This document shows positions 37,110 through 64,000 of a stretch of DNA of 64,000 nucleotides, piece after piece. The position numbers and the translations under genes were made by a program. Within the stretch, counting starts at the first letter, position 1. Every line of letters begins with the position of its first letter. The notes below the pieces were generated by a model. It saw only the letters and a program-made list of their open reading frames with translations. It had not been told where the DNA came from and ran no database searches. Source of the DNA: Chlorokybus atmophyticus (taxonomy: Eukaryota > Plantae > Mesostigma and Chlorokybus algae); the NCBI GenBank assembly GCA_009103225.1, contig RHPI01003642.1, positions 24,853 to 88,852 on the forward strand. Direction: 5' to 3'.

Positions 37110-37477
37110 TGTCGTGCCTGTTATGGTCGAGGGCAACCTTGTCTCGGACAGGCTGCGGAGGAGTGCTAGTGCTGCACGCATGCTAGTGCCGTGCACTGCA
37201 TTGGAGTCATGCAAACAAAAGACAACCCCCCAATCGTGGGCATAGGCTTGAAGATGGGCCTACGCGATGTTTAGTGTAGTGGACGAGCCGATGCCGCTCG
37301 CCACCTTTGTGTACAGACTGTGCCGTAGTGCACACAGTCAACAAGCCACTACGATAGGTAGTGCTGTGGACACAGTTCTTTGCATGAGTGGATAGAATGA
37401 TACACTGTTAAGTGAGGTGAATGAGTGTGCAACACGTGGATACAACACCCTGACTACTGAAACAACACACCACCGAN

Positions 37478-42380: not shown

Positions 42381-42619
42381 TGTCGTGCCTGTTATGGTCG
42401 AGGGCAACCTTGTCTCGGACAGGCTGCGGAGGAGTGCTAGTGCTGCACGCATGCTAGTGCCGTGCACTGCATTGGAGTCATGCAAACAAAAGACAACCCC
42501 CCAATCGTGGGCATAGGCTTGAAGATGGGCCTACGCGATGTTTAGTGTAGTGGACGAGCCGATGCCGCTCGCCACCTTTGTGTACAGACTGTGCCGTAGT
42601 GCACACAGTCAACAAGCCA
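42381..42619 (-). repeat. Partial (239-bp) LTR unit of the DNMT-gypsy family abutting the broken protease (also 37110-37348)
   Basis: Matches the PPT-proximal 239 bp of the 891-bp unit, with about 7 substitutions versus 43272-43510. Confidence 0.85.
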
Positions 42620-43510
42620 CTACGATAGGTAGTGCTGTGGACACAGTTCTTTGCATGAGTGGATAGAATGATACACTGTTAAGTGAGGTGAATGAGTGTG
42701 CAACACGTGGAAACAACACCCTGACTACTGAAACAACACACCACCGACAAGCTCACAGCAATGACAGGCACAGCGCACAAGAGCATGCACCGTGTCTCAC
42801 GCAGTAAGGGAATTCTTGGCAACCGGGGCAGCGTGCTTCCAGTTCAAGTCGCTTCACAAGCTCTTTAGAAACAGAGTCTTTACTTCTTAGTACTCCTAGT
42901 ACTCACAGTACTCACTTACAGTGTCACCAGCCAGTCTGGTGACGTGACTTCCTACTTATACATGTCAAATCATGACTGTGCAGTGCCACGCGGGCACTAG
43001 GCCAACGGTCACATCGAGGCCTCATGCTATTTCGGAAATCTCCTAAGACTTGATATAGCACATGTGTTCTTAACAGACTTGCAACTGATCAGCTACGCGC
43101 GGTCCCTACAGACAGGTCTATAAAGTAGCCCTAGCTACATGCTACATGAGTGGTACAGTAGCTAGCAGTAGGCTGGGGCTCGCGCGGTCTTCATGCTGGT
43201 AGCCCGGGCGTGGGGCTGGGTGTAGGCATGCTTGAGAAGAACTGGCATGCGAGGGTAGATGGCATGACAGCTGTCGTGCCTGCCATGGTCGAGGGCAACC
43301 TTGTCTCGGACAGGCTGCGGAGGAGTGCTAGTGCTGCACGCATGCTAGTGCCGTGCACTGCATTGGAGTCATGCAAGCAAAAGACAACCCCCCAATCGTG
43401 GGCATAGGCTTGAAGATGAGCCTACGCGGTGTTTAGTGCAGTGGACGAGCCGATGCCGCTCGCCACCTTTGTGTACAGACTGTGTCGTAGTGCACACAGT
43501 CAACAAGCCA
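42620..43510 (-). repeat. 3' LTR (891-bp unit) of DNMT-gypsy copy 1
   Basis: Begins TGGCTTG on the minus strand directly after the G7 PPT (43511-43517). Near-identical to 52935-53825 and 53826-54716. Confidence 0.92.
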
Positions 43511-43556
43511 CCCCCCCTGAGATTCTGGGGTAGCCCTCTGCTCCAGAACTCAGTTC

Positions 43557-46500: not shown

Positions 46501-49500
46501 CTAGCTTGGAGAGGCGGTACTGTCTTCTGAACACCGGTTCGGTGTCCACTAGTTCAATGTCCATCTGGTATGCTGAGCAGATGCCCAGCTCCTTCACACT
46601 GAAGCTGAATTGGCTCCTCCACTTGTTGAGGAGAGCCTCGAGTTGCTCTCGAGTCTGGCCTGTGGCCAGCGGTCCAATGGCGTGGGACCACGAGGTAGCA
46701 TTGGCGACCACTGGAATGTCTTCCACAGTGACTGCTGCCTGCTCCTCCATGTGGGCGGTCTCGAGGGCGGTGTGTGCTGCTTTGGTCTCTGAGAAGCGAG
46801 CAATCCACCCCCCAGCCAGGTGTTCAAGCTCCTAGAAGGACACATGGCGGTCCTGGAGAGCAAAGCACATTTCCAAGTACCACACCATGCTGTTCTGATC
46901 CATGGCGCGTCCTAACAACTGACATTGTTGACTGGTTGTCAGTGTGGAGCCTGTGATGCTGCCTGGAAAGAATCCCATAGCACGCTCGCGCTCACGAGCG
47001 TTGGGTTCTTCCAGCTGTCTAGTGTTGGAGTCTAACACCATGCCGTCGCCTCCATTGCGGAACGCGTAGGAGCCTGGATAGGATACAAGCGTGGGTAGTG
47101 CGCGGCGCGGCTGACCAGGCTGGTTGCACTGGTAGAAGTGGTGGTGGTCACGGCGTGTGACTGGTTGCGCTGTGCGTCCAGGGTCCAGGATGTCATTGAC
47201 GACGAGATTTCGTGGCCGATTGCTGTATAGGTACTCCGCCAGAAACAGGTCTTCCACAACGGCCAGGTTGGTCCACTTGGCGCGGACGCGGTGTGCACGA
47301 GATCCATGACGCGCGGCATTGATTTTGAGAGGATGCCCCAGCAAGGAGCATACTTGCCGATAGGCCTTGGCGACGTGATGCCGCTTGTCATCCTCAGAGT
47401 GCACATTTTCGATGATGTACCCCAAGGGTCTAGCGATCTGACTGGTCTGTAGGAGTTTGATGACTCTCATTAGCTCCCAGAACAGCTGTGAGCGAGGATC
47501 AGAGAGCCCTTGGCCTCTGCCTGCCCTGGAGTGCCCTTGACACTCCCATCCTGCTATCAGCAGGTCAATGTTGCCGACTGCCTGCAGGTGATCCTTGGTA
47601 ATCCAGCGGATGTCCTGCGGTAGAGCCTTCTGGCTCCCTTGCAGTGCCGACAGCGGTAGCTGCTGCGGGTAGCGCTGGTGCAGCTGTCGTAAATGATGGC
47701 TCAGAGCCTCCTGTGCATGAGGGTCAGTGTCACAGCAGAGGTACTTGGTGACTGTTGTTCCTGTGTTGAGGACAGCCGCAAGCCCACTGCCTATGCCTCC
47801 GAACAGCTCCAGCACGGTGATGCTCTGTTGTCAGCGGAACATGTGGAACTCCACAACTCCCGTAGCTATATGGTACTGCTCCTGCACTGTAGCCTGGTCT
47901 TTGTAGACAGGAAAGTGTGCAGTGAGCTGAGGCCTGGTCAGCAGCATGTGTGCTGCTACTTGTGCGCTCCAGCGACGCTCGGATGGCTCCTGAAAGGCCA
48001 CTTCATTGTTGACAGTCTCCTGAGACTCATCGTACGGTGTAGGAGAGTCCTCCTCAGCGTTTAGGCTCGGGCTCGAGCTTGCAGTTGTCCTTGGCTGCGT
48101 TCGGGCACGAGGCACACGTGAGCGTTTTGTAGAACTGTAGGTGGCTGCTGCGGCCAATCTTCGTTGCGAGCGGACTTTGGCCACCAGTTCGAGAGGTAGG
48201 AATCCCTGCTCCTCTCCATCATCCTCATCCCAATGTGGTCGAAACCATGCCTGCTCAGTCCAGCAGTCCAGCCCTATGCCGATAGGGAAGTTGCAGTCCT
48301 GTCCCAACAGTAGGTCAAAGGACCCGGCATCGGTGACCACACACCTTTGTACAATCTCGGTGCTGTGGGAAGGGTTTAGTCCGGTGAGGCGGATGCTCAC
48401 AGCCTGCTTGGTAAGGCCGAGTACCTTGTCGCGGTTGCCGGTTGCGGTGTCCAGCTGGTAGGGACAAGGAAGCAGCTCAGCGCTGGTGATGCCGAGATCT
48501 CGTGCGAGATAGCGCCCAATGATGACAGGCTGTGCTCCAGTGTCCAGCATCACGCGTTTGGGTGCTTGCCCATTGACGTTCACGTGCTTGCCTTGGTTGG
48601 CGATCATGGCTGCATTGGCGTTGATGCGCAGCCTCTTGAAGCGACGGAACCTCTTGCGTGGAGAGACTGTTGCTTTACTCTCATCTGTGGGGCCTGACCG
48701 TAGGGCAGCCAGGGCTCCTCTGCCTGATGGATCTTGTGGGCCTCCTTGTCCTCGGCTTTGTCCAAACCGTCCTTGTCGCGGTTGCTGGTACACGCGTGGT
48801 GGCCTAGGCACTGGAGGTGCTGCTGCAACCTGTCCAAGTGGAGGTGCAGGAGGGTTGACCCTCTGTGCAGCTGTTGTCATGCCAGGAGGAGTGGCCAGTG
48901 GCTGTGGCGGGAACCCTGGAGGACCTGGTGTTTGCGGGACTGCCTCTCGTGCAGCCTGCTCCTCTGCATAGGTCCATCGCACAGCATGGGCTGCCTCTCT
49001 GACTAGTGTACCTTCCCATGTCGCCGTCGCATTGTTGTCCACGTCTATATAGCGATGGTTCTGAGGCATGGGCTGCAGGTACACTGCGCGTAGGAGCCGC
49101 GCCCTCATGTCGTGAGTAATGGTGGGCACCCTGAGGATCCCTGCCATGTACGCATCCCATCTGCCGTTGACCACTCCCACTTCCAGCACTGTTATTGCTC
49201 GTGTGCGTACAGTGAGGCGGGTTTCTGGCTGTTGGACATGCTGCTCGTAAGCAGCGGCGATGCGCCTGCGCTGACGTCCTGCCTCCACTCCTGGCAAACT
49301 CAGTATCGCCTCCAGAGCTCCCTCCAGAGTGTCAGTGGCGGCGGAAGCCACTTCATCATAGGCTTGCCGTATGGAGCGAAGGAATGCGTCCACCCACGCT
49401 ATTCTGGCGCCGAAAGCGAACAACGGGACTGCGGGATGGTTGGTGACCAGCCACGTCACTAACCGTGCGCGTGCCGCGTTGCCATTGTCTCGCATCCCAA

Positions 49501-52500
49501 GCATCTGCCGGAGTCCGATGCCTTCTTGACGATGCAGCATGGTTGCTTGTTGCAACAGAGCAGTGCGTAGTTGTTGCTCTCCAACCAGTCCTGCTCCATC
49601 TCTTTGTGTACACCCTTGTGGTGTAAGGTAGCCCCTCCCTGGCTCCCTTTGGTCCTCAGGTAGATCCTCCACCAGCGCAGGCAGCAACGGGGCGATCACC
49701 CCCCTGGTTTGTTGAGTCAACGCCCTCGCTTGGTCAGAGTTGATCTCGACGAAGAGCGGAGTGGTGCTGGAGGATGGACCAGCAGTGGGTGACTGAGGTA
49801 TTGGTGCACGTGTAGCTTTAAGAGCTTGCTCACGTGCAGCAATGGCGGCAGCTTGATCCTGTCGCCAATGATATGCTTGTTCAAGTGCGTGGTAGCGCTG
49901 ATGAAGACGAGCGGTTGTAGGAGGTCCGAGTTCTTCATCAGTGCCCAAAGGCAGGTTGGCTGCGTCGGCGATGCGCTGCTGAACGGTGTCTCGGCGGTCC
50001 CGATACGTGTCCAATGGGCTGGGTTAAAAGGTGGTGGTTGGCATGCGTGCAGGCTGGCGCGGGGCGGTCTGCATGTTGTTGTGCAATGCCCAGAACAGCT
50101 GCAGAGCCAACTCCAACACTACAGGTGGGCTGTAGCTGATCAAAAACACCCTGTCACGCATCGGAGGTGCAGTGCCAGCAAGGATCTCATCTTCTAACTG
50201 GTGTTGAGTGAGTGCTGGAAGGGTGTGAACCTATGGTAACGGGAAGACGCGATCATCGCGGGCGACACGCGTGGTGCGCTCCCCCCCCCGACCGAAGGCG
50301 ATGGTAGTGGGGTCTGCTCCGCGCAGGATGGTCTCCCATGCTCGCTCAGCTTACTGACCAGTTGGGACAGCCTGAGTGACGTCGAGAGCGGGCAGAGTGG
50401 CTGCGCGCGTCGCTGCAGAGACAGCGGGCTCGACGATGGCCATTGTGGCAGTTGCGACGGTATCGGTCGGTGGTGCGAGAGTTGTCTCAACGCCTACGGA
50501 CAGAGGCCCTGCTGTAGTGGGAAGTGCACCGCCCACTGGTGCAGGTTCGGTAGTGATGGCGGCTGCTGCCAGTGTGCTCACCAGCGTCGGCGTCACGGTG
50601 CCCACCGGCGTACCAGGTTGTGGTGCAACTGGAGTGGGTACTGCTGACGTTGGTGGAGTCGACGTTGTAGCCGGTGTGGCTGTCGCTGCGGAGGCAGCTC
50701 CACTGGTGGCTTCGGAGGAGGTGCCTGCTGATGTTGTTGCAGCTTCCCCTCGTGCTCGTCGTGATGGTTGCACGCGGGACGGAGTGTTCCTGTCTCTCTC
50801 GCGTTTTGCAGCCATCAGCGCCCATCGGGCCGTGTAGCAGGCGCGGTAGTCCTGCTCCTTGTCTTCCTCCAAGCGTGCTATATGTGCCATGAGGGCTGCC
50901 ATATGGTCATCAGCTGGTGGGTTGGCTGAAGCCTTGGCGGCAACAGCAGCAGCGCGCGGACGTGTCTCTGGTCCCTTACGCTGAGGAGGTCTGTTCTTCC
51001 CCCTGTAGCCTTGCTCTTCCTTGCGAACACTGGCGTTGTTGTTGTTGTTGCCACCAGCGTTGTTGCTATTGTGGCCACTGAAGTGGTTGCCAGTGTGGCC
51101 CCCAGTGTTGTTGCTGTTGTAGCCACTGAAGTTGTTGCCAGTGTGGCCCCCGGTGTTGTTGCTGTTGTAGCCACCGAGGTAGTTGTGGTTGTAGCTGTTG
51201 GCGGGCCTCAACTCTGGGAACTTGAGCCAGCAAACTGACTCCAAATGACCAGTCTTGTGACAGTGGTCGCAAACCAAAGTTGAGTATTCTTCGGTGCACT
51301 CCTTTTGGTAGTGCCCATGCCGTCCACAGCGATGACACAGCACAGGGGCAGCAAGTGCAGCATGAGCTGACCGTTTCCCTTTGTCGCGTGCTGGTGGAGC
51401 GTCCCGGCCACGGTTGCGGCGAGGAGGCTCAGTTGTTGTGCTGACTACAGGCCGTACGGCGCTGCGGTTGGTGTCCAGCACTGCCTTCTCATACACCAAG
51501 CGCTTGTGGATGGCTTGTGCAGTCTCGANAGTTGTCGTGCTGACTACAGGCCGTACGGCGCTGCGGTTGGTGTCCAGCACTGCCTTCTCATACACCAAGC
51601 GCTTGTGGATGGCTTGTGCAGTCTCGAAGGCTTCTTTGAGGGTGTAGCCAAGGGGCCTGCTGTAGTTCAGAGTCAGGCGTGTCGACTCGCTCAGAGCAGC
51701 ATCCAACTCATTGACGTATATCACTGCAGCAGCCTCCTCACTGACAATCTTGTAGTCAGTGTCCTTCAGCAGACCTTCCAGTCTGGAGTACAAGCGGAGG
51801 GGATCCTCATTGGGCTTGCGTCGGAAGCGTCTCAGCTCCTCAACCTTGCTGGTGGTCTGAGGAGGGAAGGTGCGGCGCAGGGCAGCGTACAGGTCCTTGA
51901 GTGGAGAATCAGAGATGGCAGCACCTACGGTGATGGCTGGTGCGCGCAGTGCTACTGACCCGAGGGTGAAAGCGCTGCCTCCTGCACGAGAGCCAGGTGT
52001 TGCTGGAGGTAGAGGAGTACCCCACTCTGCGGCTGCCGCTTGCTGTACAGCTCTTTGTTCCTCAATGATGCTGGCAGAACGGTCAAGGATGCGGACTCGA
52101 CGTGTGGCCTCCTTGGACTCAACTTCTGCAGGGGTCAAGTTGACAAGTACCAACTCTGGTTCCTCCTCCTCTGCCTGCTTGAGAGCTGCAGCTATGGACA
52201 AGCCTGTTACTGCAACTGAAGTGGCAGGTGGAACGACACCTGCTGGACGGTGCAGAGATGCAGATGCTATGGTGCTGGCAAGCTCGCCATAGCCGTCTAC
52301 TCGATGCAGTTCAGCAACGGACTTCCAGACATCGTGTGCTTCATGATCAAGATACTGAGCAGCAATGTGGAAAGAGATCTCATCTGACCAGTCTTTGTTC
52401 TTCAGTGCTTGCTGCCGCATCTTGGAGTGGAACTTGATGATGAACTCATCCAGCGAGGTGGTGCCGGCACGTCCGGAGAAGCGCAGGGATGTGGTTGAAC

Positions 52501-52720
52501 TGGAAGATTCCATCTCGTTGTCGTCGCTGTCCGATGATAGTGGAGAAGCTTGATGACGAGGAGTAGAGTGGAGCGGGGTGAAGCTGGAGATGGAGCGCGA
52601 GCCTCTGCTGCTGCGGTCGATGCTCCCGTCACTGGTCCGCTCGTAGGTGAGGTTGGTGGTTGGGCTCCAACTGCTGAGGTCACCCTCGTCTATTGGGGAG
52701 AACGGGGTGGGCCTGCTCAT
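43557..52720 (-). pseudogene. Disrupted gag-pol-DNMT-PHD polyprotein of copy 1
   Basis: Relative to copy 2: TAA 50351-53, TAG 50231-33, TGA 47831-33, TAG 46832-34, and a 1-bp deletion in a C-run at about 45602. Confidence 0.93.
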
Positions 52721-52909
52721 ACAGCTGGTCCAGAGGTGAAAGGGTAGAGTGCTTGTGCTCTACCGTCTATCCTGATGCTGTTACCACCCAACACACTAGT
52801 GCTTGTGCGCACTATGTGATGACAATGATAACGAATGCCCAGCGATGTATCCCTGGGTGCAGACTGCACTATCTGATGCAGATTGCAACACACTCACTTG
52901 TGCAAAGAG

Positions 52910-52924
52910 GGTGACACTGTAAGT
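52910..52924 (-). promoter_or_regulatory. Putative self-priming primer-binding site / U5 end
   Basis: Minus-strand ACTTACAGTGTCACC spans the ...CTTACA LTR end. It is perfectly complementary to GGTGACACTGTAAGT at 53243-53229 inside the LTR. Confidence 0.65.
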
Positions 52925-53825
52925 CAACAAGCCACTACGATAGGTAGTGCTGTGGACACAGTTCTTTGCATGAGTGGATAGAATGATACACTGTTAAGTG
53001 AGGTGAATGAGTGTGCAACACGTGGATACAACACCCTGACTACTGAAACAACACACCACCGTCAAGCTCACAGCAATGACAGGCACAGCGCACAAGAGCA
53101 TGCACCGTGTCTCACGCAGTAAGGGAATTCTTGGCAACCGGGGCAGCGTGCTTCCAGTTCAAGTCGCTTCACAAGCTCTTTAGAAACAGAGTCTTTACTT
53201 CTTAGTACTCCTAGTACTCACAGTACTCACTTACAGTGTCACCAGCCAGTCTGGTGACGTGACTTCCTACTTATACATGTCAAATCATGACTGTGCAGTG
53301 CCACGCGGGCACTAGGCCAACGGTCACATCGAGGCCTCATGCTATTTCGGAAATCTCCTAAGACTCGATATAGCACATGTGTTCTTAACAGACTTACAAC
53401 TGATCAGCTACGCGCGGTCCCTACAGACAGGTCTATAAAGTAGCCCTAGCTACATGCTACATGAGTGATACAGTAGCTAGCAGTAGGCTGGGGCTCGCGC
53501 GGTCTTCATGCTGGTAGCCCGGGCGTGGGGCTGGGTGTAGGCATGCTTGAGAAGAACTGGCATGCGAGGGTAGATGGCATGACAGCTGTCGTGCCTGTCA
53601 TGGTCGAGGGCAACCTTGTCTCGGACAGGCTGCAGAGGAGTGCTAGTGCTGCACGCATGCTAGTGCCGTGCACTGCATTGGAGTCATGCAAGCAAAAGAC
53701 AACCCCCCAATCGTGGGCATAGGCTTGAAGATGAGCCTACGCGGTGTTTAGTGCAGTGGACGAGCCGATGCTGCTCGCCACCTTTGTGTACAGACTGTGT
53801 CGTAGTGCACACAGTCAACAAGCCA
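52918..53825 (-). repeat. 5' LTR of copy 1 (908 bp, TG...CA)
   Basis: On the minus strand it starts TGGCTTGTTGACT and ends TGGCTTGTTGACTTACA. Confidence 0.85.
53271..53275 (-). promoter_or_regulatory. Putative LTR TATA box
   Basis: TATAAG on the minus strand, 32 nt upstream of G53243, the predicted transcript start. Same motif in each LTR unit. Confidence 0.55.
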
Positions 53826-54716
53826 CTACGATAGGTAGTGCTGTGGACACAGTTCTTTGCATGAGTGGATAGAATGATACACTGTTAAGTGAGGTGAATG
53901 AGTGTGCAACACGTGGATACAACACCCTGACTACTGAAACAACACACCACCGTCAAGCTCACAGCAATGGCAGGCACAGCGCACAAGAGCATGCACCGTG
54001 TCTCACGCAGTAAGGGAATTCTTGGCAACCGGGGCAGCGTGCTTCCAGTTCAAGTCGCTTCACAAGCTCTTTAGAAACAGAGTCTTTACTTCTTAGTACT
54101 CCTAGTACTCACAGTACTCACTTACAGTGTCACCAGCCAGTCTGGTGACGTGACTTCCTACTTATACATGTCAAATCATGACTGTGCAGTGCCACGCGGG
54201 CACTAGGCCAACGGTCACATCGAGGCCTCATGCTATTTCGGAAATCTCCTAAGACTTGATATAGCACATGTGTTCTTAACAGACTTGCAACTGATCAGCT
54301 ACGCGCGGTCCCTACAGACAGGTCTATAAAGTAGCCCTAGCTACATGCTACATGAGTGATACAGTAGCTAGCAGTAGGCTGGGGCTCGCGCGGTCTTCAT
54401 GCTGGTAGCCCGGGCGTGGGGCTGGGTGTAGGCATGCTTGAGAAGAACTGGCATGCGAGGGTAGATGGCATGACAGCTGTCGTGCCTGTCATGGTCGAGG
54501 GCAACCTTGTCTCGGACAGGCTGCAGAGGAGTGCTAGTGCTGCACGCATGCTAGTGCCGTGCACTGCATTGGAGTCATGCAAGCAAAAGACAACCCCCCA
54601 ATCGTGGGCATAGGCTTGAAGATGAGCCTACGCGGTGTTTAGTGCAGTGGACGAGCCGATGCCGCTCGCCACCTTTGTGTACAGACTGTGTCGTAGTGCA
54701 CACAGTCAACAAGCCA
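53826..54716 (-). repeat. 3' LTR (891-bp unit) of DNMT-gypsy copy 2, fused head-to-tail to the 5' LTR of copy 1
   Basis: Follows the G7 PPT (54717-54723). About 4 differences from the adjacent unit. Confidence 0.9.
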
Positions 54717-54723
54717 CCCCCCC
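54717..54723 (-). other. Polypurine tract (G7) for plus-strand priming; same at 43511-43517
   Basis: CAGGGGGGG immediately precedes the TG LTR start on the minus strand. Confidence 0.8.
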
Positions 54724-54762
54724 TGAGATTCTGGGGTAGCCCTCTGCTCCAGAACTCAGTTC

Positions 54763-57700
54763 CTACCGACTGTGTGGGGGACCGTTGATGCGGCAGTCAT
54801 CGCACCAGTACTCCCACAAGGGTACTGCGTCCAGTGGAGGGTCAAGGCAGTAGCAGTGCATGCCTTGATTACAGCCGTCGCATAACATCATCAATGGGTC
54901 GTCGTCGGCGCTGCCACACTTCTCGCATCGGGTGCTGCGCAGCGGACGCGGGTGCTGGATCTTGGTGAAGCCAGCAATGTAGGGGAGATGACAGGGCGCA
55001 CAGTTGACCATGTTGTCCTTCATGCGCTCGCCTCGTTGTCCCAACAGGTCCAGTACCCCTGTGGGGTGCACCTTCAATACCTTGTAGACAGCACGCCCGA
55101 CGGAGGTATCGAGGGTGTCGCGTGTAGACGCCATACGGTAGACGAAGTCTCCTGACTCGAAGCGGCGCTCCCGCTCCTTGTAGAAACCACTGCGCACACG
55201 CTCGTAACGCAGCGTGTCGCGGTGCTGCGCGATGCGCAGGTTGTTGAAGGCCATGGGGACTGTGTGTTCGAACAGCGCACTGCGCACTGTCAGATCATAC
55301 AACATCTCGTCGGGGTTGTCGAGATTGTCCACCACTCTGTCGACCTCCTGCTGTGCGCGGAAAGGGAGCAATGGCTGCCTTCCGAACAGTAGATAGTATG
55401 GGCTGTACTCTCGCAGGGCTGCCTGCTTGGACAGCCGGTAGCCCATTGCTACCCATGGGAGGTGATCATCCCAGGTATTCTTCTCGTAGGCGAGGACGTA
55501 CTTGCGCAGTGCCTTCTTGATGGTCTGCACGGTACGCTCGGCGAGGCCGTCGGCCTGCGGGTGGTCGCGTGAGGTGCGACGGTGGTCGATGAAGCATCTG
55601 TCGATAAGCTTGTCGAAGGCTCCTCTGAACTCCGTACCCTGGTCGGTGATGACTTCAGCGCAGCTGCCGAAACGTCCGAGTACATGGGAGAGGAAAGCCT
55701 GGGCTACTCCCTCACTGCTCTTGTCGGGCAGGGGCACCAGCTCCACCCACTTGGAGAAGTGCTCGATCATGACGAGGATGTAGCGGTTGCCTCGCGCTGA
55801 GGGCGCTAGGTCTCCGAGGATGTCCAGTCCCCAGCGGTAGAACAACCCGGAAATGGGAAGGGGATGCAAGGTGGCATTGCGCGTGTTGAGGCTGGCGCGA
55901 ACCATGTCACACTGCTGACAGTTGCTGACGAACTCCCGCACCTGTCTGTGCACCCCATACCACCAGTACCGGGTCCTGACCAGGCTGACCGTGCGCTTGA
56001 CACCGAAGTGCCCGAGCTCGGTGTGAAGGGAGGAGATGATGCCTTCACGTGCAGCTGGTGTGGGGACCTCCTGATCTGCATCTTGTATCCGTCGATACAG
56101 CCTGTCGTTGGCCCAGCGGTAACGCTGAGTGCGTTGCCGGACGCGGTCCTTCTCGCGTGCGCTCATGCCTGCTGGAAGTTGTCCAGTCTGAAGCAGTGCG
56201 AGGGATGGCTCGTCCAGCCAGATGTCTTGTCGTGTGTCGGTGGGTGCCAGCTCCTCATCATCCACCTCAGGGTCGGCAGCGATTGCTTCTTCTGATAAAG
56301 GATCGGTGGTGGTGATGGCGGGCTCGAGAGCGGGCATGTCCCCGTCTGCTGCTGCCTCAGCGATCTGAGTCCTGCGTCCTGAGCGTAGCGCAGCGACAGC
56401 GAACATGGTGGCCACACCTGCAGGTGCAGCTGTAGGACCCAACTCATGTCGGGCGCCTGTGGCGTCGTTGGTGCTGAGGTGGGGGTTACGGCTGAGGCCA
56501 TCCGCATCCTGGTTGGCAAGGCCTGCGCGGTGTTCCACCTCGAAGTCGTACTCCTGGAGCAGCAGCGCCCATCGTGCTAACTTTCCTGTCAAGTGCTGGT
56601 TGTTCATTAGCCACTTGAGGGGTTGATGGTCAGTGACCAGTTGGAACTGCCGTCCAAACAGAAAGGGTCGGAAGAAGGAGATGGCCCACACTGCGGCGAG
56701 ACACTCCCCTTCGTAGCTGCTGTAGTTGGCCTCAGCACTGTTGTTGCTGCGGCTGGCGTACGACACTACGCGCTCCTTCTTGTTGTTGTCATGCTGTACG
56801 AGCACGGCCCCCATGCCGAGCTTGCTCCAGTCTGTGTGCAGGATGAACGACCTGGTGTAGTCCGGGCGTTGCAGAATGGGAGCTGTGGTGAGGCGGAGCT
56901 TCAGTTCCTGAAAGGCCTCCTGTTGTGCCTCCTTCCACAAGAACTCGGTGTCCTTCTTCAGTAGTTCGTTGAGAGGCCTTGCGATCTTGGCAAAGTCTTT
57001 GACAAACCGTCGGTAATAGTTGGCAAGGCCGAGGAAGGCCCGCAGCCGCGTGAGGTCTGTGGGGGCAGGGATAGCCACCAGTGCCTCCACTTTGGCCTGC
57101 TGTACGTACACACCATGGGGCACAATCATGTGTCCTAGGTAGGGTACCTTGTGGGTGAAGAAGGTGCACTTGTCAGGGTGCACCGTCATCCCGACTTCCT
57201 TCAGCCTCTGTAGCACCTCTTCGATGTGCTGGAGATGCTCCTCATTGCTGTGACTGAAGATGAGGATGTCGTCGATGTAGCAGCGCGCGAAGTCCAACCC
57301 CTTGAGGGCTTTGTCCATGACGCGCTGGAACTTGGCCGGAGCGTTCTTCAGTCCGAAGGGCATGACCTTCCACTGGTACAGCTGCCGGTTTCCCCAGAAG
57401 GAAGTCTTGTGCTTGTCCTCCTCCTTGATGGCGATCTGGTTGTACCCTTGGCGCATATCCAGGATACTAAAGACCGTGCAGTCTCCTACATCGTCAAAGA
57501 TGCCTTCTGCGGTAGGCATTGGATACCTGTCCTGCTTGGTCTTGTTGTTGAGGGGGCGATAGTCGCCACACATGCGCCGGTCTGTCCAGTTGCCTGCTGA
57601 ATCTTTCTTCAGGGGCATGACGGTCGCGGCCGCAAAGTCCGATGTGGACTCCTCGATCAGGCCTGCATCTAGCAGCGCCTTGCACCTCTGTTCCACCAAG

Positions 57701-60700
57701 TCTTCTTCTAGCTTGGAGAGGCGGTACTGTCTTCTGAACACCGGTTCGGTGTCCACTAGTTCAATGTCCATCTGGTATGCTGAGCAGATGCCCAGCTCCT
57801 TCACACTGAAGCTGAATTGGCTCCTCCACTTGTTGAGGAGAGCCTCGAGTTGCTCTCGAGTCTGGCCTGTGGCCAGCGGTCCAATGGCGTGGGACCACGA
57901 GGTAGCGTTGGCGACCACTGGAATGTCTTCCACAGTGACTGCTGCCTGCTCCTCCATGTGGGCGGTCTCGAGGGCGGTGTGTGCTGCTTTGGTCTCTGAA
58001 AAGCGAGCAATCCACCCCCCAGCCAGGTGTTCGAGCTCCTGGAAGGACACATGGCGGTCCTGGAGAGCAAAGCACATTTCCAAGTACCACACCATGCTGT
58101 TCTGATCCATGGCGCGCCCTAACAACTGACATTGTTGACTGGTTGTCAGCGTGGAGCCTGTGATGCTGCCTGGAAAGAATCCCATAGCACGCTCGCGCTC
58201 GCGGGCATTGGGTTCTTCCAGCTGTCCAGTGTTGGAGTCCAACACCATGCCGTCGCCTCCATTGCGGAACGCGTAGGAGCCTGGATAGGATACAAGTGTG
58301 GGTAGTGCGCGGCGCGGCTGACCAGGCTGGTTGCACTGGTAGAAGTGGTGGTGGTCAAGGCGTGTGACCGGTTGCGCTGTGCGTCCAGGGTCCAGGATGT
58401 CATCGACGACGAGATTTCGTGGCCGATTGCTGTATAGGTACTCTGCCAGAAACAGGTCTTCCACAATGGCCAGGTTGGTCCACTTGGCGCGGACGCGGTG
58501 TGCACGAGATCCATGACGCGCGGCGTTGATTTTGAGAGGATGCCCCAGCAAGGAGCATACTTGCCGATAGGCCTTGGCGACGTGGTGCCGCTTGTCATCC
58601 TCGGAGTGCACATTCTCGATGATGTACCCCAAGGGCCTAGCGATCTGACTGATCTGTAGGAGTTTGATGACTCTCATTAGCTCCCAGAACAGCTGTGAGC
58701 GAGGATCAGAGAGCCCTTGGCCTCTGCCTGCCCTGGAGTGCCCTTGACACTCCCATCCTGCTATCAGCAGGTCAACGTTGCCGACTGCCTGCAGGTGATC
58801 CTTGGTAATCCAGCGGATGTCCTGCGGTAGAGCCTTCTGGCTCCCTTGCAGTGCCGACAGCGGTAGCTGCTGCGGGTAGCGCTGGTGCAGCTGTCGTAAA
58901 TGATGGCTCAGAGCCTCCTGTGCATGAGGGTCAGGGTCACAGTAGAGGTACTTGGTGACTGTTGTTCCTGTGTTGAGGACAGCCGCAAGCCCACTGCCTA
59001 TGCCTCCGAACAGCTCCAGCACGGTGATGCCTTGTTGTCGGCGGAACATGTGGAACTCCACAACTCCAGTAGCTATGTGGTACTGCTCCTGCACTGTAGC
59101 CTGGTCTTTGTAGACAGGGAAGTGTGCAGTGAGCTGAGGCCTGGTCAGCAGCATGTGTGCTGCTACTTGTGCGCTCCAGCGACGCTCGGATGGCTCCTGA
59201 AAGGCCACTTCTTTGGTGACAGTCTCCTGAGACTCATCGTACGGTGTAGGAGAGTCCTCTTCAGCGTTTAGGCTCGGGCTCGAGCTCGTTGCAGTTGTCC
59301 TCGGCTGCGTTCGGGCACGAGGCACACGTGAGCTTTTTGTAAGACTGTAGGTGGCTGCTGCGGCCGATCTTCGTTGCGAGCGGTCCTTGGCCACCAGTTC
59401 GAGAGGTAGGAATCCCTGCTCCTCTCCATCGTCCTCATCCCAATGTGGTCGAAACCATGCCTGCTCAGTCCAGCAGTCCAGCCCCATGCCGACAGGGAAG
59501 TTGCAGTCCTGTCCCAACAGTAGGTCAAAGGACCCGGCATCGGTGACCACACACCTTTGTACAATCTCGGTGCTGTGGGAAGGGTTTAGTCCGGTGAGGC
59601 GGATGCTCACAGCCTGCTTGGTAAGGCCGAGTACCTTGTCACGGTTGCCGGTTGCGGTGTCCAGCTGATAGGGACAGGGAAGCAGCTCAGCGCTGGTGAT
59701 GCCGAGATCTCGTGCGAGGTAGCGCCCAATGATGACAGGCTGTGCTCCAGTGTCCAGCATCACGCGTTTGGGTGCCCGCCCATTGACGGTCACGTGCTTG
59801 CCTTGGTTGGCGATCATGGCTGCATTGGCGTTGATGCGCAGCCTCTTGAAGCGACGGAACCTCTTGCGTGGAGAGACTGTTGCTTTACTCTCATCTGCGG
59901 GGCCTGACCGTAGGGCAGCCAGGGCTCCTCTGCCTGATGGATCTTGTGGGCCTCCTTGTCCTCGGCTTTGTCCAAACCGTCCTTGTCGCGGTTGCTGGTA
60001 CACGCGTGGTGGCCTAGGCACTGGAGGTGCTGCTGCAACCTGTCCAAGTGGAGGTGCAGGAGGGTTGACCCTCTGTGCAGCTGTTGTCATGCCAGGAGGA
60101 GTGGCCAGTGGCTGTGGCGGGAACCCTGGAGGACCTGGTGTTTGCGGGACTGCCTCTCGTGCAGCCTGCTCCTCTGCATAGGTCCATCGCACAGCATGGG
60201 CTGCCTCTCTGACTAGTGTACCTTCCCATGTAGCCGTCGCATTGTTGTTCACGTCTATATAGCGATGGTTCTGAGGCATGAGCTGCAGGTACACTGCGTG
60301 TAGGAGCCGCGCTCTCATGTCGTGAGTGATGGTGGGCACCCTGAGGATCCCTGCCATGTAAGCATCCCATCTGCCGTTGACCACTCCCACTTCCAGCACT
60401 GTTATTGCTCGTGTGCGTACAGTGAGGCGGGTCTCTGGCTGTTGGACATGCTGCTCGTAAGCAGCGGCGATGCGCCTGCGCTGACGTCCTGCCTCCACTC
60501 CTGGCAAACTCAGTATAGCCTCCAGAGCTCCCTCCAGAGTGTCAGTGGCGGCGGAAGCCACTTCATCATAGGCTTGCCGTATGGAGCGAAGGAATGCGTC
60601 CACCCACGCTATTCTGGCGCCGACAGTGAACAACGGGACTGCGGGATGGTTGGTGACCAGCCACGTCACTAACCGTGCGCGTGCCGCGTTGCCATTGTCT

Positions 60701-63700
60701 CGCATCCCAAGCATCTGCCGAAGTCCGATGCCTTCTTGCCGATGCAGCATGGTTGCTTGTCGCAACAGAGCAGTGCGTAGTTGTTGCTCTCCAACCAGTC
60801 CTGCTCCATCTCTTTGTGTACACCCTTGTGGTGTAAGGTAGCCCCTCCCTGGCTCCCTTTGGTCCTCAGGTAGATCCTCCACCAGCGCAGGCAGCAACGG
60901 GGCGATCACCCCCCTGGTTTGTTGAGCCAACGCCCTCGCTTGGTCAGAGTTGGTCTCGACGAAGAGCGGAGTGGTGCTGGAGGATGGACCAGCAGTTGGT
61001 GACTGAGGTATTGGTGCACGTGTAGCTTCAAGAGCTTGTTCACGTGCAGCAATGGCGGCAGCTTGATCCTGTCGCCAATGATATGCTTGTTCCAGTGCGT
61101 GGTAGCGCTGATGAAGACGAGCGGTTGTAGGAGGTCCGAGTGCTTCATCAGTGCCCAAAGGCAGGTCGGCTGCGTCGGCGATGCGCTGCTGGACGGCGTC
61201 TCGGCGGTCCCGATACGTGTCCAACGGGCTGGGTTCAAAGGTGGTGGTTGGCATGCGTGCAGGCTGGCGCGGGGCGGTCTGCATGTTGTTGTGCAACGCC
61301 CAGAACAGCTGCAGAGCCAACTCCAACACTACAGGTGGGCTGTAGCTGATCAAAAACACCCTGTCACGCATCGGAGGTGCAGTGCCAGCAAGGATCTCAT
61401 CTTCTAACTGGTGTTGAGTGAGTGCTGGAAGGGTGTGAACCTCTGGTAGCGGGAAGACGCGATCATCGCGGGCGACACGCGTGGTGCGCTCCCCCCCCCG
61501 ACCGAAGGCGATGGTAGTGGGGTCTGCTCCGCGCAGGATGGTTTCCCATGCTCGCTCAGCTTGCTGACCAGTTGGGACAGCCTGAGTGACGTCGAGAGCG
61601 GGCAGAGTGGCTGCGCGCGTCGCTGCAGAGACAGCGGGCTCGACGATGGCCATTGTGGCAGTTGCGACGGTATCGGTCGGTGGTGCGAGAGTTGTCTCAA
61701 CGCCTACGGACAGAGGCACTGCTGCAGTGGGAAGTGCACCGCCCACTGGTGCAGATTCGGTAGAGATGGCGGCTGCTGCCAGTGTGCTCACCAGCGTCGG
61801 CGTCACGGTGCCCACCGGTGTACCAGGTTGTGGTGCAACTAAAGTGGGTAATGCTGACGTTGATGGAGTCGACGTTGTAGCCGGTGTGGCTGTTGCTGCG
61901 GAGGCAGCACCACTGGTGGCTTCGGAGGAGGTGCCTGCTGATGTTGTTGCAGCTTCCCCTCGTGCTCGTCGTGATGGTTGCACGCGGGACGGAGTGTTCC
62001 TGTCTCTCTCGCGTTTTGCAGCCATCAGCGCCCATCGGGCAGTGTAGCAGGCGCGGTAGTCCTGCTCCTTGTCTTCCTCCAAGCGTGCCATACGCGCCAT
62101 GAGGGCTGCCATATGGTCATCAGCTGGTGGGTTGGCTGAAGCCTTGGCGGCAACAGCAGCAGCGCGCGGACGTGTCTCTGGTCCCTTACGCTGAGGAGGT
62201 CTGTTCTTCCCCCTGTAGCCTTGCTCTTCCTTGCGAACACTGGCGTTGTTGTTGTTGTTACTGCCACCAGCGTTGTTGCTGTTGTGGGCTCCAGTGTTGT
62301 TGCTATTGTAGCCACTGAAGTGGTTGCCAGTGTGGCCCCCAGTGTTGTTGCTGTTGTAGCCACTGAAGTTGTTGCCAGTGTGGCCTCCAGTGTTGTTGCT
62401 GTTGTAGCCACCGGAGTAGTTGTGGTTGTAGCTGTTGGCGGGCCTCAACTCTGGGAACTTGAGCCAGCAGACTGACTCCAAATGACCAGTCTTGTGACAG
62501 TGGTCGCAAACCAAAGTTGAGTATTCTTCGGTGCACTCCTTTTGGTAGTGCCCATGCCGTCCACAGCGATGACACAGCACAGGGGCAGCAAGTGCAGCAT
62601 GAGCTGACCGTTTCCCTTTGTCGCGTGCTGGTGGAGCGTCCCGGCCACGGTCGCGGCGAGGAGGCTCAGTTGTCGTGCTGACTACAGGCCGTACGGCGCT
62701 GCGGTTGGTGTCCAGCACTGCCTTCTCATACACCAAGCGCTTGTGGATGGCTTGTGCAGACTTGAAGGCTTCTTTGAGGGTGTAGCCAAGGGGCCTGCTG
62801 TGATTCAGAGTCAGACGTGTCGACTCGCTCAGAGCAGCATCCAACTCATTGACGTATATCACTGCAGCAGCCTCCTCACTGACAATCTTGTAGTCAGTGT
62901 CCTTCAGCAGACCTTCCAGTGTGGAGTACAAGCGGAGGGGATCCTCAGCGGGCTTGCGTCGGAAGCGTCTCAGCTCCTCAACCTTGCTGGTGGTCTGAGG
63001 AGGGAAGGTACGGCGCAAGGCAGCGTACAGTTTTTTGAGTGGAGAATCAAAGATGGCAGCACCTACGGTGATGGCTGGTGCGCGCAGTGCCACTGACCCG
63101 AGGGTGAAAGCGCTGCCTCCTGCACGAGAGCCAGGTGTTGCCGGAGGTAGAGGAGTACCCCACTCTGCGGCTGCCGCTTGCTGTACAGCTCTTTGTTCCT
63201 CAATGATGATGGCAGAACGGTCAAGGATGCGGACTCGACGTGTGGCCTCCTTGGACTCAACTTCTGCAGGGGTCAAGTTGACCAGTACTAACTCTGGTTC
63301 TTCCTCCTCTGCCTGCTTGAGAGCTGCAGCTATGGTCAAGCCTGTTACTGCAACTGAAGTGGCAGGTGGAATGACGCCTGCTGGACGATGCAGGGATGCA
63401 GATGCTATGGTGCTGGCAAGCTCGCCATAGCCGTCTACTCGATGCAGTTCAGCAACGGACTTCCAGACATCGTGTGCTTCATGATCAAGATACTGAGCAG
63501 CAATGTGGAAAGAGATCTCATCTGACCAGTCTTTGTTCTTCAGTGCTTGCTGCCGCATCTTGGAGTGGAACTTGATGATGAACTCATCCAGCGAGGTGGT
63601 GCCGGCACGTCCGGAGAAGCGCAGGGATGTGGTTGAACTGGAAGATTCCATCTCGTTGTCGTCGCTGTCCGATGATAGTGGAGAAGCTGGATGACGAGGA

Positions 63701-63858
63701 GTAGAGTGGAGCGGGGTGAAGCTGGAGATGGAGCGCGAGCCTCTGCTGCTGCGGTCGATGCTTCCGTCACTGGTCCGCTCGTAGGTGAGGTTGGTGGTTG
63801 GGCTCCAACTGCTGAGGTCACCCTCGTCTATTGGGGAGAACCGGGTGGGCCTGCTCAT
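54763..63858 (-). CDS. 3031-aa Gag-PR-DNMT-RT-RNaseH-IN-PHD polyprotein
   Basis: CHRCGRHGHYQKEC and CDHCHKTGHLESVC knuckles. Protease MLDTGAQ (about 59760). MTase ELFGGIG / GWECQG / ENV / RVR / LLGRA (59022-58060). RT RMCGDYR, LDMRQGY, MPFGL, YIDD (about 57270). RNase H LHTDWS...YEGECLA...TDHQPL. Integrase H..LGH...CQQC, GLD, TDQG, AER. PHD C4HC3 (54927-54793). Confidence 0.97.
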   Translation of the reverse strand: MSRPTRFSPIDEGDLSSWSPTTNLTYERTSDGSIDRSSRGSRSISSFTPLHSTPRHPASPLSSDSDDNEMESSSSTTSLRFSGRAGTTSLDEFIIKFHSKMRQQALKNKDWSDEISFHIAAQYLDHEAHDVWKSVAELHRVDGYGELASTIASASLHRPAGVIPPATSVAVTGLTIAAALKQAEEEEPELVLVNLTPAEVESKEATRRVRILDRSAIIIEEQRAVQQAAAAEWGTPLPPATPGSRAGGSAFTLGSVALRAPAITVGAAIFDSPLKKLYAALRRTFPPQTTSKVEELRRFRRKPAEDPLRLYSTLEGLLKDTDYKIVSEEAAAVIYVNELDAALSESTRLTLNHSRPLGYTLKEAFKSAQAIHKRLVYEKAVLDTNRSAVRPVVSTTTEPPRRDRGRDAPPARDKGKRSAHAALAAPVLCHRCGRHGHYQKECTEEYSTLVCDHCHKTGHLESVCWLKFPELRPANSYNHNYSGGYNSNNTGGHTGNNFSGYNSNNTGGHTGNHFSGYNSNNTGAHNSNNAGGSNNNNNASVRKEEQGYRGKNRPPQRKGPETRPRAAAVAAKASANPPADDHMAALMARMARLEEDKEQDYRACYTARWALMAAKRERDRNTPSRVQPSRRARGEAATTSAGTSSEATSGAASAATATPATTSTPSTSALPTLVAPQPGTPVGTVTPTLVSTLAAAAISTESAPVGGALPTAAVPLSVGVETTLAPPTDTVATATMAIVEPAVSAATRAATLPALDVTQAVPTGQQAERAWETILRGADPTTIAFGRGGERTTRVARDDRVFPLPEVHTLPALTQHQLEDEILAGTAPPMRDRVFLISYSPPVVLELALQLFWALHNNMQTAPRQPARMPTTTFEPSPLDTYRDRRDAVQQRIADAADLPLGTDEALGPPTTARLHQRYHALEQAYHWRQDQAAAIAAREQALEATRAPIPQSPTAGPSSSTTPLFVETNSDQARALAQQTRGVIAPLLPALVEDLPEDQREPGRGYLTPQGCTQRDGAGLVGEQQLRTALLRQATMLHRQEGIGLRQMLGMRDNGNAARARLVTWLVTNHPAVPLFTVGARIAWVDAFLRSIRQAYDEVASAATDTLEGALEAILSLPGVEAGRQRRRIAAAYEQHVQQPETRLTVRTRAITVLEVGVVNGRWDAYMAGILRVPTITHDMRARLLHAVYLQLMPQNHRYIDVNNNATATWEGTLVREAAHAVRWTYAEEQAAREAVPQTPGPPGFPPQPLATPPGMTTAAQRVNPPAPPLGQVAAAPPVPRPPRVYQQPRQGRFGQSRGQGGPQDPSGRGALAALRSGPADESKATVSPRKRFRRFKRLRINANAAMIANQGKHVTVNGRAPKRVMLDTGAQPVIIGRYLARDLGITSAELLPCPYQLDTATGNRDKVLGLTKQAVSIRLTGLNPSHSTEIVQRCVVTDAGSFDLLLGQDCNFPVGMGLDCWTEQAWFRPHWDEDDGEEQGFLPLELVAKDRSQRRSAAAATYSLTKSSRVPRARTQPRTTATSSSPSLNAEEDSPTPYDESQETVTKEVAFQEPSERRWSAQVAAHMLLTRPQLTAHFPVYKDQATVQEQYHIATGVVEFHMFRRQQGITVLELFGGIGSGLAAVLNTGTTVTKYLYCDPDPHAQEALSHHLRQLHQRYPQQLPLSALQGSQKALPQDIRWITKDHLQAVGNVDLLIAGWECQGHSRAGRGQGLSDPRSQLFWELMRVIKLLQISQIARPLGYIIENVHSEDDKRHHVAKAYRQVCSLLGHPLKINAARHGSRAHRVRAKWTNLAIVEDLFLAEYLYSNRPRNLVVDDILDPGRTAQPVTRLDHHHFYQCNQPGQPRRALPTLVSYPGSYAFRNGGDGMVLDSNTGQLEEPNARERERAMGFFPGSITGSTLTTSQQCQLLGRAMDQNSMVWYLEMCFALQDRHVSFQELEHLAGGWIARFSETKAAHTALETAHMEEQAAVTVEDIPVVANATSWSHAIGPLATGQTREQLEALLNKWRSQFSFSVKELGICSAYQMDIELVDTEPVFRRQYRLSKLEEDLVEQRCKALLDAGLIEESTSDFAAATVMPLKKDSAGNWTDRRMCGDYRPLNNKTKQDRYPMPTAEGIFDDVGDCTVFSILDMRQGYNQIAIKEEDKHKTSFWGNRQLYQWKVMPFGLKNAPAKFQRVMDKALKGLDFARCYIDDILIFSHSNEEHLQHIEEVLQRLKEVGMTVHPDKCTFFTHKVPYLGHMIVPHGVYVQQAKVEALVAIPAPTDLTRLRAFLGLANYYRRFVKDFAKIARPLNELLKKDTEFLWKEAQQEAFQELKLRLTTAPILQRPDYTRSFILHTDWSKLGMGAVLVQHDNNKKERVVSYASRSNNSAEANYSSYEGECLAAVWAISFFRPFLFGRQFQLVTDHQPLKWLMNNQHLTGKLARWALLLQEYDFEVEHRAGLANQDADGLSRNPHLSTNDATGARHELGPTAAPAGVATMFAVAALRSGRRTQIAEAAADGDMPALEPAITTTDPLSEEAIAADPEVDDEELAPTDTRQDIWLDEPSLALLQTGQLPAGMSAREKDRVRQRTQRYRWANDRLYRRIQDADQEVPTPAAREGIISSLHTELGHFGVKRTVSLVRTRYWWYGVHRQVREFVSNCQQCDMVRASLNTRNATLHPLPISGLFYRWGLDILGDLAPSARGNRYILVMIEHFSKWVELVPLPDKSSEGVAQAFLSHVLGRFGSCAEVITDQGTEFRGAFDKLIDRCFIDHRRTSRDHPQADGLAERTVQTIKKALRKYVLAYEKNTWDDHLPWVAMGYRLSKQAALREYSPYYLLFGRQPLLPFRAQQEVDRVVDNLDNPDEMLYDLTVRSALFEHTVPMAFNNLRIAQHRDTLRYERVRSGFYKERERRFESGDFVYRMASTRDTLDTSVGRAVYKVLKVHPTGVLDLLGQRGERMKDNMVNCAPCHLPYIAGFTKIQHPRPLRSTRCEKCGSADDDPLMMLCDGCNQGMHCYCLDPPLDAVPLWEYWCDDCRINGPPHSR
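62245..62437 (-). repeat. 48-nt coding tandem repeat (GYNSNNTGGHTGNxFS) plus poly-Asn in Gag; counterpart at about 51035-51200
   Basis: Repeated gtgttgttgctgttgtagcca...gttgccagtgtggcc units on the + strand. Unit number differs between the two copies. Confidence 0.9.
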
Positions 63859-64000
63859 ACAGCTGGTCCAGAGGTGAAAGGGTAGAGTGCTTGTGCTCTA
63901 CCGTCTATCTTGATGCTGTTACCACCCAACACACTAGTGCTTGTGCGCACTATGTGATGACAATGATAACGAATGCCCAGCGATGTATCCCTGGGTGCAG

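Follow-up and report, generated by a model that had tools for sequence, protein, structure and literature searches.

A Ty3/gypsy retrotransposon of the Gypsy-DNMT3 kind with a DNMT3-type cytosine methyltransferase domain inside Pol

Introduction

KnitGypsy-Dnmt3, a retrotransposon of the alga Klebsormidium nitens, carries an intron-free, unpermuted Dnmt3 domain within a gypsy Pol, with a Ka/Ks below 0.2 (de Mendoza et al., 2018, Nat Commun 9:1341, PMC5890265). The same report remarked on the odd, DIRS-like repeat structure of the K. nitens family (PMC5890265), and a 2026 preprint still lists 'streptophytes (Gypsy-DNMT3)' as the known case. Here we describe an element of this kind in a 64,000-nt stretch of DNA from Chlorokybus atmophyticus (contig RHPI01003642.1, positions 24,853 to 88,852 of the forward strand), referred to below as the window. 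The window contains two copies of the element, A and B, both on the minus strand. We conclude that copy B is a full-length Ty3/gypsy long terminal repeat (LTR) retrotransposon of the Gypsy-DNMT3 kind, and that the element is a new, diverged member of the kind published in 2018.

Captured 5-methylcytosine (5mC) methyltransferases are also found in two other sorts of retroelement, SymbioDIRS-Dnmt3 of Symbiodinium and the EpiLTRs of Cymbomonas and Euglena, which are independent captures according to their papers. Both differ from the window element in backbone: SymbioDIRS-Dnmt3, whose domains methylate CG de novo in yeast, is a DIRS element with a tyrosine recombinase, and the EpiLTRs are chromoviruses with a DAM domain and a DNMT4-like domain at the 3′ end of pol. 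Our literature search found no further paper on the Gypsy-DNMT3 family, and none describing the chlorophyte layout reported below. The breadth of the family, its two layouts, its Glu-Cys loop, the covariation of its self-primer and its LTR-LTR junctions may go beyond published work.

Results

Copy B carries an uninterrupted Gag-Pol reading frame

Copy B (53813..64000, minus strand) comprises the 3′ LTR, a polypurine tract, the full open reading frame (ORF) and 142 nt of 5′ leader, and is colinear with copy A in a self-BLAST comparison. Its single Gag-Pol ORF (54763..63858, minus strand) starts with ATG and runs for 3031 aa with zero internal stops in the ORF listing. Pfam places within it, in order, Gag with two CCHC knuckles, protease, a C5 cytosine methyltransferase (MTase), reverse transcriptase (RT), RNase H, integrase and a PHD finger; the protease-RT-RNase H-integrase order and the CCHC knuckles in Gag are those of Ty3/gypsy elements. 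A sequence-only reading of this DNA had described an intact Ty3/gypsy polyprotein in one uninterrupted frame, and the ORF and the Pfam order agree with it on the frame. The window ends 142 nt upstream of the copy B ATG, leaving the 5′ LTR of copy B beyond base 64000, so that "intact" is demonstrated only for the ORF and the 3′ LTR. Copy B was probably active recently: its ORF is uninterrupted, and copy A has LTRs that match each other at 99.1% identity.

The MTase domain is nearest to DNMT3 in sequence and predicted fold

The MTase domain occupies residues 1610–1934 (58057..59031, minus strand), between the protease and RT, with motifs I–X collinear. In the translation, motif I reads VLELFGGIG (58996–59022) and is followed by YCDPD (58930–58944), QDI (58816–58824), motif IV AGWECQG (58741–58761), motif VI IIENV (58609–58623), motif VIII HRVRAKWTN (58474–58500), motif IX RERAMGFFPG (58168–58197) and motif X QLLGRAM (58108–58128), all on the minus strand. 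The sequence-only reading had placed a C5-MTase of ~320 aa with ordered motifs here; every string that it quoted was found, with coordinates agreeing within a few bases, and PF00145, the profile that it had named as a check, matches above the curated cut-off (residues 1679–1758; E 8.6e-10; 39 bits vs a cut-off of 22). This match covers motifs IV–VI only, and NCBIfam assigns the domain only to the generic dcm superfamily.

When the MTase domain alone (METHYLTRANSFERASE) was compared with solved structures, DNMT3A, 3C and 3B came first (3e-7), followed by M.HaeIII (3e-5) and DRM2. A search with a profile built from 41 short relatives ranked DNMT3A first (E 1e-26), then DNMT3C and DNMT3B (~1e-24), tobacco DRM (5e-15), DRM2 (3e-11), M.HhaI (1e-9) and DNMT2 (3e-5); DNMT1, chromomethylase (CMT) and DNMT5 were absent below 0.01 in this search. 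The alignment of the profile with DNMT3A consists of three collinear blocks (I; IV–VIII; IX–X), indicating that the MTase domain is unpermuted, unlike DRM. An AlphaFold model of residues 1590–1960, with the relatives' alignment as input, reached a mean predicted local distance difference test score (pLDDT) of 91.1 and a predicted template modelling score (pTM) of 0.89. The top 50 fold matches of this model in the PDB were all DNMT3A, B or C (E ~1e-18; target-normalised TM score 0.80–0.83; root-mean-square deviation (rmsd) ~3.5 Å), a likeness well above chance, and viral C5-MTases fitted it much worse (rmsd 7–16 Å). The DNMT3 resemblance proposed from the letters alone thus holds by profile and by fold. 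Sequence and model together identify a complete DNMT3-type C5 cytosine methyltransferase domain, and DNMT3 is the closest among the classes with solved structures, no DNMT4 or DNMT6 entry having been seen among the matches.

Compared with cellular DNMT3A, 3B and 3C, the window MTase has the same motif order, the same H-R-x-R...W-x-N block in motif VIII and a motif IX–X tail that aligns. By contrast, identity is only ~21%, the window MTase lies inside a retroelement polyprotein without PWWP or ADD domains (zero Pfam matches to either anywhere in the 3031 aa), it is ~30 residues longer between motifs VIII and IX, and it has Glu for Pro before the catalytic Cys.

The MTase is conserved and under purifying selection

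We counted alignment columns over 41 relatives that are 33–46% identical to the window MTase domain. The nucleophile Cys and the Gln that follows it are each kept in 40 of the 41, the motif VI Glu and the motif IX Gly in all 41, and the two Arg of the motif VIII pair in 41 and 39, respectively. Both Glu-Asn-Val in motif VI and Arg-x-Arg in motif VIII are present in the window MTase.

Copy A (42607..53825, minus strand; both LTRs present by self-BLAST) is a second, broken copy 11.2 kb upstream of copy B. Its LTRs lie at 42607–43510 and 52922–53825 (minus strand), and its broken Gag-Pol (43557..52720, minus strand) differs from that of copy B by six in-frame stops, one frameshifting indel and three in-frame indels; somewhere in the ORF the copies also differ in length at two in-frame places, by 99 and 27 nt. 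In the self-BLAST comparison 42381–52862 aligns to 53587–64000 at 97.9% identity, reaching base 64000. With copy A compared as it stands, this one pair of copies gives a dN/dS of 0.18 for the MTase (15 synonymous and 9 non-synonymous changes; P = 6e-5 vs neutrality), 0.09 for RT-RNase H, 0.12 for integrase and 0.24 for the whole ORF (P = 1.6e-19). Purifying selection on the MTase is therefore as strong as on the classical Pol enzymes (protease, integrase); the sequence-only reading had named relaxed selection as the test of its functional model, and what we found is constraint. The low dN/dS also indicates that most of the divergence between A and B arose in replicating lineages, and hence that the two copies are not a simple local duplication.

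Transitions account for 135 of the 178 differences between the copies, and 49 of the 178 are at CpG/TpG-CpA sites, with CpG lost 34 times in copy A and 15 times in copy B. Such a skew towards copy A would be expected if the dead copy were methylated and decaying by deamination.

The family is large and has two domain layouts

A search of representative proteins returned 2568 at E up to 1e-3 and 259 clusters at E up to 1e-30, and the MTase identity of database proteins to the window element never exceeds 52%. The sequence-only reading had correctly cited the K. nitens precedent (PMC5890265); its description of such captures as rare was overstated, given the hundreds of diverged clusters in public data. 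We took a census of domain layout in 259 collected relatives (P0001–P0259). The order RT-RNase H-MTase-integrase-PHD (RT-RH-MT-IN-PHD) was found in 121 proteins, with Haematococcus, Chromochloris and Cymbomonas (chlorophytes) as named hosts. The order protease-MTase-RT-RNase H-integrase, with or without the PHD (PR-MT-RT-RH-IN(-PHD)), was found in 43 proteins and in the window element, the hosts being Klebsormidium, Closterium spp. and the liverwort Calypogeia fissa (streptophytes). The liverwort protein, P0201, is a fragment annotated with protease and MTase, indicating that the family reaches land plants. A neighbour-joining tree of the MTases, midpoint-rooted, without support values and thus descriptive, splits along the two layouts. 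Consistent with transposition of a block within the polyprotein, BLAST alignment of a Haematococcus element with the window element shows the MTase moved relative to RT-RNase H, with all blocks ~41–43% identical. The segment of 130 aa that links MTase to RT in the window element is conserved, matching 20 relatives.

Motif IV of the window MTase reads Glu-Cys-Gln and not the usual Pro-Cys dipeptide, a point on which the sequence-only reading had made no comment. Among 202 relatives, 115 have Glu ahead of the catalytic Cys, 78 have Pro and 9 have some other residue. K. nitens has Pro-Cys, and Closterium and Haematococcus have Glu-Cys; each form is found in both layouts. Because Glu and Pro alternate in this way, the change from Pro to Glu looks tolerated rather than a step to decay.

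The K. nitens element (contig DF238327.1, protein KFL_013780020) has the same order of Gag with zinc knuckle, MTase and RT-RNase H-integrase as the window element. The two MTases are homologous, with 36.9% identity across 328 aa (E 3e-54), the family tree places them in one and the same half, both are under purifying selection (Ka/Ks below 0.2 there; 0.18 here, from one copy pair), and the odd repeats there have a parallel in the abutting LTRs of the window. The elements differ in that their RT-integrase regions are only 45.5% identical, motif IV has Pro-Cys there and Glu-Cys in the window, and the window element has ~880 extra residues between nucleocapsid and protease. Contig DF238327.1 is cut at both ends, and the PHD and self-primer are not comparable. 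We considered whether the window element is KnitGypsy-Dnmt3 itself and rejected this on the 36.9% MTase identity; together with the RT-integrase value, this identity makes the window element a lineage distinct from that of K. nitens. Judged from these sequences, the host, too, almost certainly differs from K. nitens.

Three other relatives merit comment. A 455-aa fragment that is 48% identical (P0183) is labelled as coming from a Candidatus Obscuribacterales metagenome bin, and is probably from a eukaryotic contig binned with bacteria. P0244, a relative through its RT region, carries a chromodomain. Lastly, we rejected the Cymbomonas protein P0028 as a published EpiLTR: EpiLTRs, which also have DAM and a chromodomain, carry their DNMT at the pol 3′ end, and the MTase of P0028 lies upstream of the integrase.

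The C-terminal PHD finger is closest to readers of an unmodified H3 tail

The PHD finger proposed at the C terminus was recovered at residues 2978–3022 (54793..54927, minus strand) by PF00628 (27.5 bits vs a cut-off of 24) and by PHD matches in the PDB, the best of which are the PHD fingers of KMT2D, UHRF1/2, KMT2C, BAZ2A/B, ATXR5, KDM5 and AIRE. The majority of them recognise an H3 tail that lacks methylation at K4 (or, in UHRF1, at R2), and by sequence the window PHD most resembles such readers of the unmodified H3 tail. It occupies the place of the chromovirus chromodomain, C-terminal to the integrase. The window element thus shares with chromoviruses a chromatin-reader module fused to the integrase end; it differs from them in that the reader is a PHD, whose closest solved relatives bind the unmodified H3 tail and not H3K9me, and in that Pfam finds no chromodomain. 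The PHD is retained in most relatives irrespective of the position of the MTase, and is undetected in some of the PR-MT-RT relatives.

An inverted repeat in the LTR suggests self-priming

Self-priming is known among Ty3/gypsy elements (PMC6317226). In copy B, sequence reading locates a polypurine tract of A followed by a run of G immediately before the 3′ LTR (54717..54724, minus strand), and a G-run tract is found at the matching place in two relatives, L001 and L002, that are only ~44% identical in protein to the window element. Inside the copy B LTR, a 15-mer at 54120..54134 (minus strand; arm 1) recurs at 53229–53243 in the 5′ LTR of copy A, and lies ~32 nt downstream of a TATA-like box (54161–54166 and 53270–53275, minus strand). 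Its exact 15-nt reverse complement (arm 2), in the position of a primer binding site, is at the inner edge of the copy A 5′ LTR (52910..52924, minus strand), 319 nt from arm 1, with arm 1 upstream. An inverted repeat of at least 15 nt arose in 0 of 300 shuffles of this region of the window.

The self-priming LTR of the sequence-only reading is matched in L001 and L002: the exact inverted repeat between LTR interior and inner edge is 15 nt long in both the window element and L002, and 24 nt long in L001. Two of the three elements have a TATA box 25–32 nt upstream of arm 1 (~27 nt in L002). The arm sequences are unrelated among the three, indicating that the pairing has been kept by compensatory change. 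Tf1/sushi-type self-priming is supported by this covariation in three elements, with the transcript start predicted from the TATA spacing. As in Tf1/sushi elements and the plant element Tcn1, a stretch of the LTR interior at the presumed transcript start pairs with the inner edge of the 5′ LTR, and a tRNA-type primer site is not required. The self-primer arm of Tf1 is 11 nt long, compared with 15–24 nt in the window family, and Tf1/sushi elements differ further in that the window element has a PHD and not a chromodomain. A candidate tRNA-type primer site, a 13-mer starting with TGG after the LTR, was rejected; it is the terminal direct repeat of the LTR, and the 15-nt inverted repeat is the true signal. 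No LTR pair for this comparison was found in the available locus DNA of K. nitens and Haematococcus.

Discussion

We put at roughly 55% the probability that the MTase domain is a working methyltransferase that serves the cycle of the element. The MTase would be active as a de novo DNA methyltransferase; made within Gag-Pol, it would enter the particle with RT and integrase, where it would either be cut off at the low-complexity linker that follows the protease or stay joined to RT. It would then methylate the new DNA of the element or the DNA at the insertion site, and a methylated copy would look like host DNA in its methylation state, not like foreign or repeat DNA. Methylation of cDNA inside the particle accounts for less than half of the weight that we give to a working MTase. 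The transcript would prime its own reverse transcription by pairing its folded-back 5′ end with the site just internal to the 5′ LTR, and the PHD may steer integration to chromatin with an unmodified H3 tail.

Several observations weigh against a working MTase in this role. Cleavage sites of the protease, the mature form of the enzyme, its substrate and the timing of its action are all inferred. Enzyme activity has been shown for no member of the Gypsy-DNMT3 family, and the K. nitens MTase domain gave no methylation in yeast, a result that the authors regarded as inconclusive (PMC5890265). Silent copies in K. nitens carry the CHH and CHG methylation typical of silenced transposons (PMC5890265), indicating that resident copies there gain no visible protection from self-methylation. 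Ahead of the catalytic Cys the window MTase has Glu and not the Pro of K. nitens and DNMT3A, a change that may affect catalysis. The observed/expected ratio of CpG is 0.71 in the ORF and 0.62 in the LTR, compared with 0.75 elsewhere (positions 1–30000 of the window), and the ORF thus has no special loss that would suggest heavy self-methylation. Lastly, the 5′ LTR of copy B is outside the window.

An active MTase could instead work on chromatin in the nucleus, methylating resident copies or the neighbourhoods of insertions. The ADD domain of cellular DNMT3 reads the unmodified H3 tail, and MTase and PHD would form a similar reader-writer pair, the outcome of which might be self-restraint of copy number or a CG mark like that of gene bodies. 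The resemblance of the PHD to readers of the unmodified H3 tail fits such a pair, as do a DNMT3 fold typical of enzymes that act on nucleosomal DNA and the retention of the PHD in most relatives whatever the position of the MTase. However, the PHD is at the integrase end, ~1000 residues from the MTase, where processing of the polyprotein would separate the two, and some relatives of the same layout have no detectable PHD. We consider action on resident chromatin unlikely.

That the domain has lost catalysis, with the Pro-to-Glu change having abolished methyl transfer, and now serves in nucleic-acid binding, polyprotein folding or particle assembly, would be consistent with Glu-Cys in the window element and in 115 of 202 relatives, and with the negative outcome of the sole activity test made in the family. 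Against this, both the Glu and the Pro sub-lineages keep the Cys, the Glu of motif VI, the two Arg of motif VIII and the glycines of motif I almost without exception, and such a pattern is hard to explain without catalysis; we regard a non-catalytic role as decidedly unlikely. Methylation of the element's RNA, or of the RNA:DNA hybrid during reverse transcription, was suggested by de Mendoza et al. for a DNMT borne by a long interspersed nuclear element (LINE) of Symbiodinium (PMC5890265). The window MTase is directly upstream of RT and could stay fused to it through the conserved 130-aa joint; sequence and fold are nonetheless nearest to the DNA-acting DNMT3, with the RNA-acting DNMT2 at 3e-5 vs 1e-26, making RNA or a hybrid a very improbable substrate. 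A functionless, decaying passenger in a copy B that is merely young would suit a comparison of just two copies, one of them broken, but is close to refuted by the dN/dS of 0.18 (P = 6e-5) and by catalytic residues conserved over 259 clusters (E below 1e-30) from chlorophytes and streptophytes.

Beyond a working MTase in the service of the element, we offer tentatively, and at less than even odds, a joint reading of the family from its sequences. It would be an ancient, green-lineage-wide Ty3/gypsy lineage, with the window element as one tip, whose members carry a self-contained chromatin module that pairs a DNMT3-type writer with a PHD reading the unmodified H3 tail; a single relocation of the writer would have produced the two layouts, PR-MT-RT in streptophytes (a land plant among them) and RT-RH-MT-IN in chlorophytes; and over half of the members would use a Glu-Cys loop unknown in cellular DNMTs. 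If the Glu-Cys enzymes are active, their chemistry or their substrate could differ, with nascent cDNA or hybrids as examples.

Cytosine methylation is the host's main weapon against transposons, and a transposon with its own de novo methyltransferase therefore turns that relationship around. Since 2018 the kind has been known from one alga, with activity undemonstrated. To this the window adds a 3031-aa copy without interruption that belongs to a different, diverged lineage, evidence of selection on the MTase in a second genome, and a view of a family that is large, widespread in green algae and extends to a liverwort, with two layouts and frequent Glu-Cys. The MTase is now tied to an integrase PHD and to Tf1-like self-priming, both of which bear on the lifestyle of the element. 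If the enzyme is active, these elements would offer natural examples of a parasite that labels itself with the epigenetic mark of its host.

Other features of the window

The remaining Pol domains of copy B, all on the minus strand, are a retroviral-type aspartic protease (residues 1356–1451, 59506..59793; PF13650, E 1.5e-7, and PF13975), RT (residues 2092–2245, 57124..57585; PF00078 (RVT_1), E 1.5e-33), RNase H (residues 2308–2437, 56548..56937; PF17917 and PF17919) and integrase (residues 2601–2766, 55561..56058), the last made up of an H2C2 zinc domain (PF17921, 2601–2655) and a DDE core (rve, PF00665, 2675–2766). In Gag, the two CCHC zinc knuckles of the nucleocapsid are at residues 429–464 (62467..62574, minus strand; Pfam zf-CCHC at 429–444, and sequence reading). 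Gag residues ~269–450 are weakly similar to the Gag of relatives, K. nitens included, and the 3031-aa ORF has no Pfam capsid match.

Between nucleocapsid and protease lies a lineage-specific segment for which no homologue was detected (residues 471–1350, 59809..62448, minus strand); its ~880 residues gave zero phmmer matches among the 259 collected relatives and zero matches in Pfam or the PDB. The segment is of low complexity over residues 471–780, its first part being rich in Asn/Gly/Ser and Ala/Thr/Pro, and helical over 781–1350. A single-sequence AlphaFold model of residues 781–1350 was uninformative (pLDDT 41); their dN/dS between copies A and B is 0.30 (P = 0.0017).

An 891-bp LTR unit occurs three times (42607–43497, 52922–53812 and 53813–54703). 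The 3′ LTR of copy B (53813..54716, minus strand) consists of this unit and a 13-nt terminal direct repeat, and a third LTR copy, of which only the 226-nt head is present (42381..42606, minus strand; self-BLAST), abuts the 3′ LTR of copy A. The LTR begins with TG and does not end with CA. The copy B 3′ LTR joins the copy A 5′ LTR directly (52922–54716), and the copy A 3′ LTR likewise joins the 226-nt LTR head (42381–43510). The LTR termini, at the limits of polypurine tract and primer site, share the same 10–13-mer, with one copy of it per junction. Neither a target-site duplication nor host flank was found at the junctions in the window, every visible side being LTR abutting LTR. Possible origins of these LTR-LTR junctions are a circle-type junction formed through microhomology, integration beside the element's own family and an assembly artefact. 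Were the joint reading of the family true, placement beside its own copies could reflect self-directed targeting.

Related arrangements of LTR pieces are found elsewhere. In L001 (8595–19184) a second, incomplete LTR comes after the 892-bp 3′ LTR, with an LTR tail in inverted orientation beyond it; the same extra piece stands ahead of the 5′ LTR. L002 (1–18357; a record whose name has the suffix _c) is purely a head-to-tail array with a period of 8262 bp, 99.8% identity and one LTR-like spacer per unit. The window itself contains a tandem duplication of a 5271-bp segment (32207–37476 and 37478–42747, 99.98% identical). Each unit terminates in an LTR tail and an LTR head and holds 88-nt repeats 419 bp apart, and the segment carries an ORF with a weak aspartic-protease match (36499–37101, E 0.0025).

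Scans of the window for Rfam families and tRNAs gave zero matches of either sort. Host-like exons are present at 13621–14148 (plus strand), 25512–26084 (plus strand) and 30428–31024 (minus strand), matching a cytochrome P450, a kinesin-associated protein (KAP) and a class I S-adenosylmethionine (SAM) methyltransferase, respectively. The KAP exon suggests a host that bears flagella or cilia.

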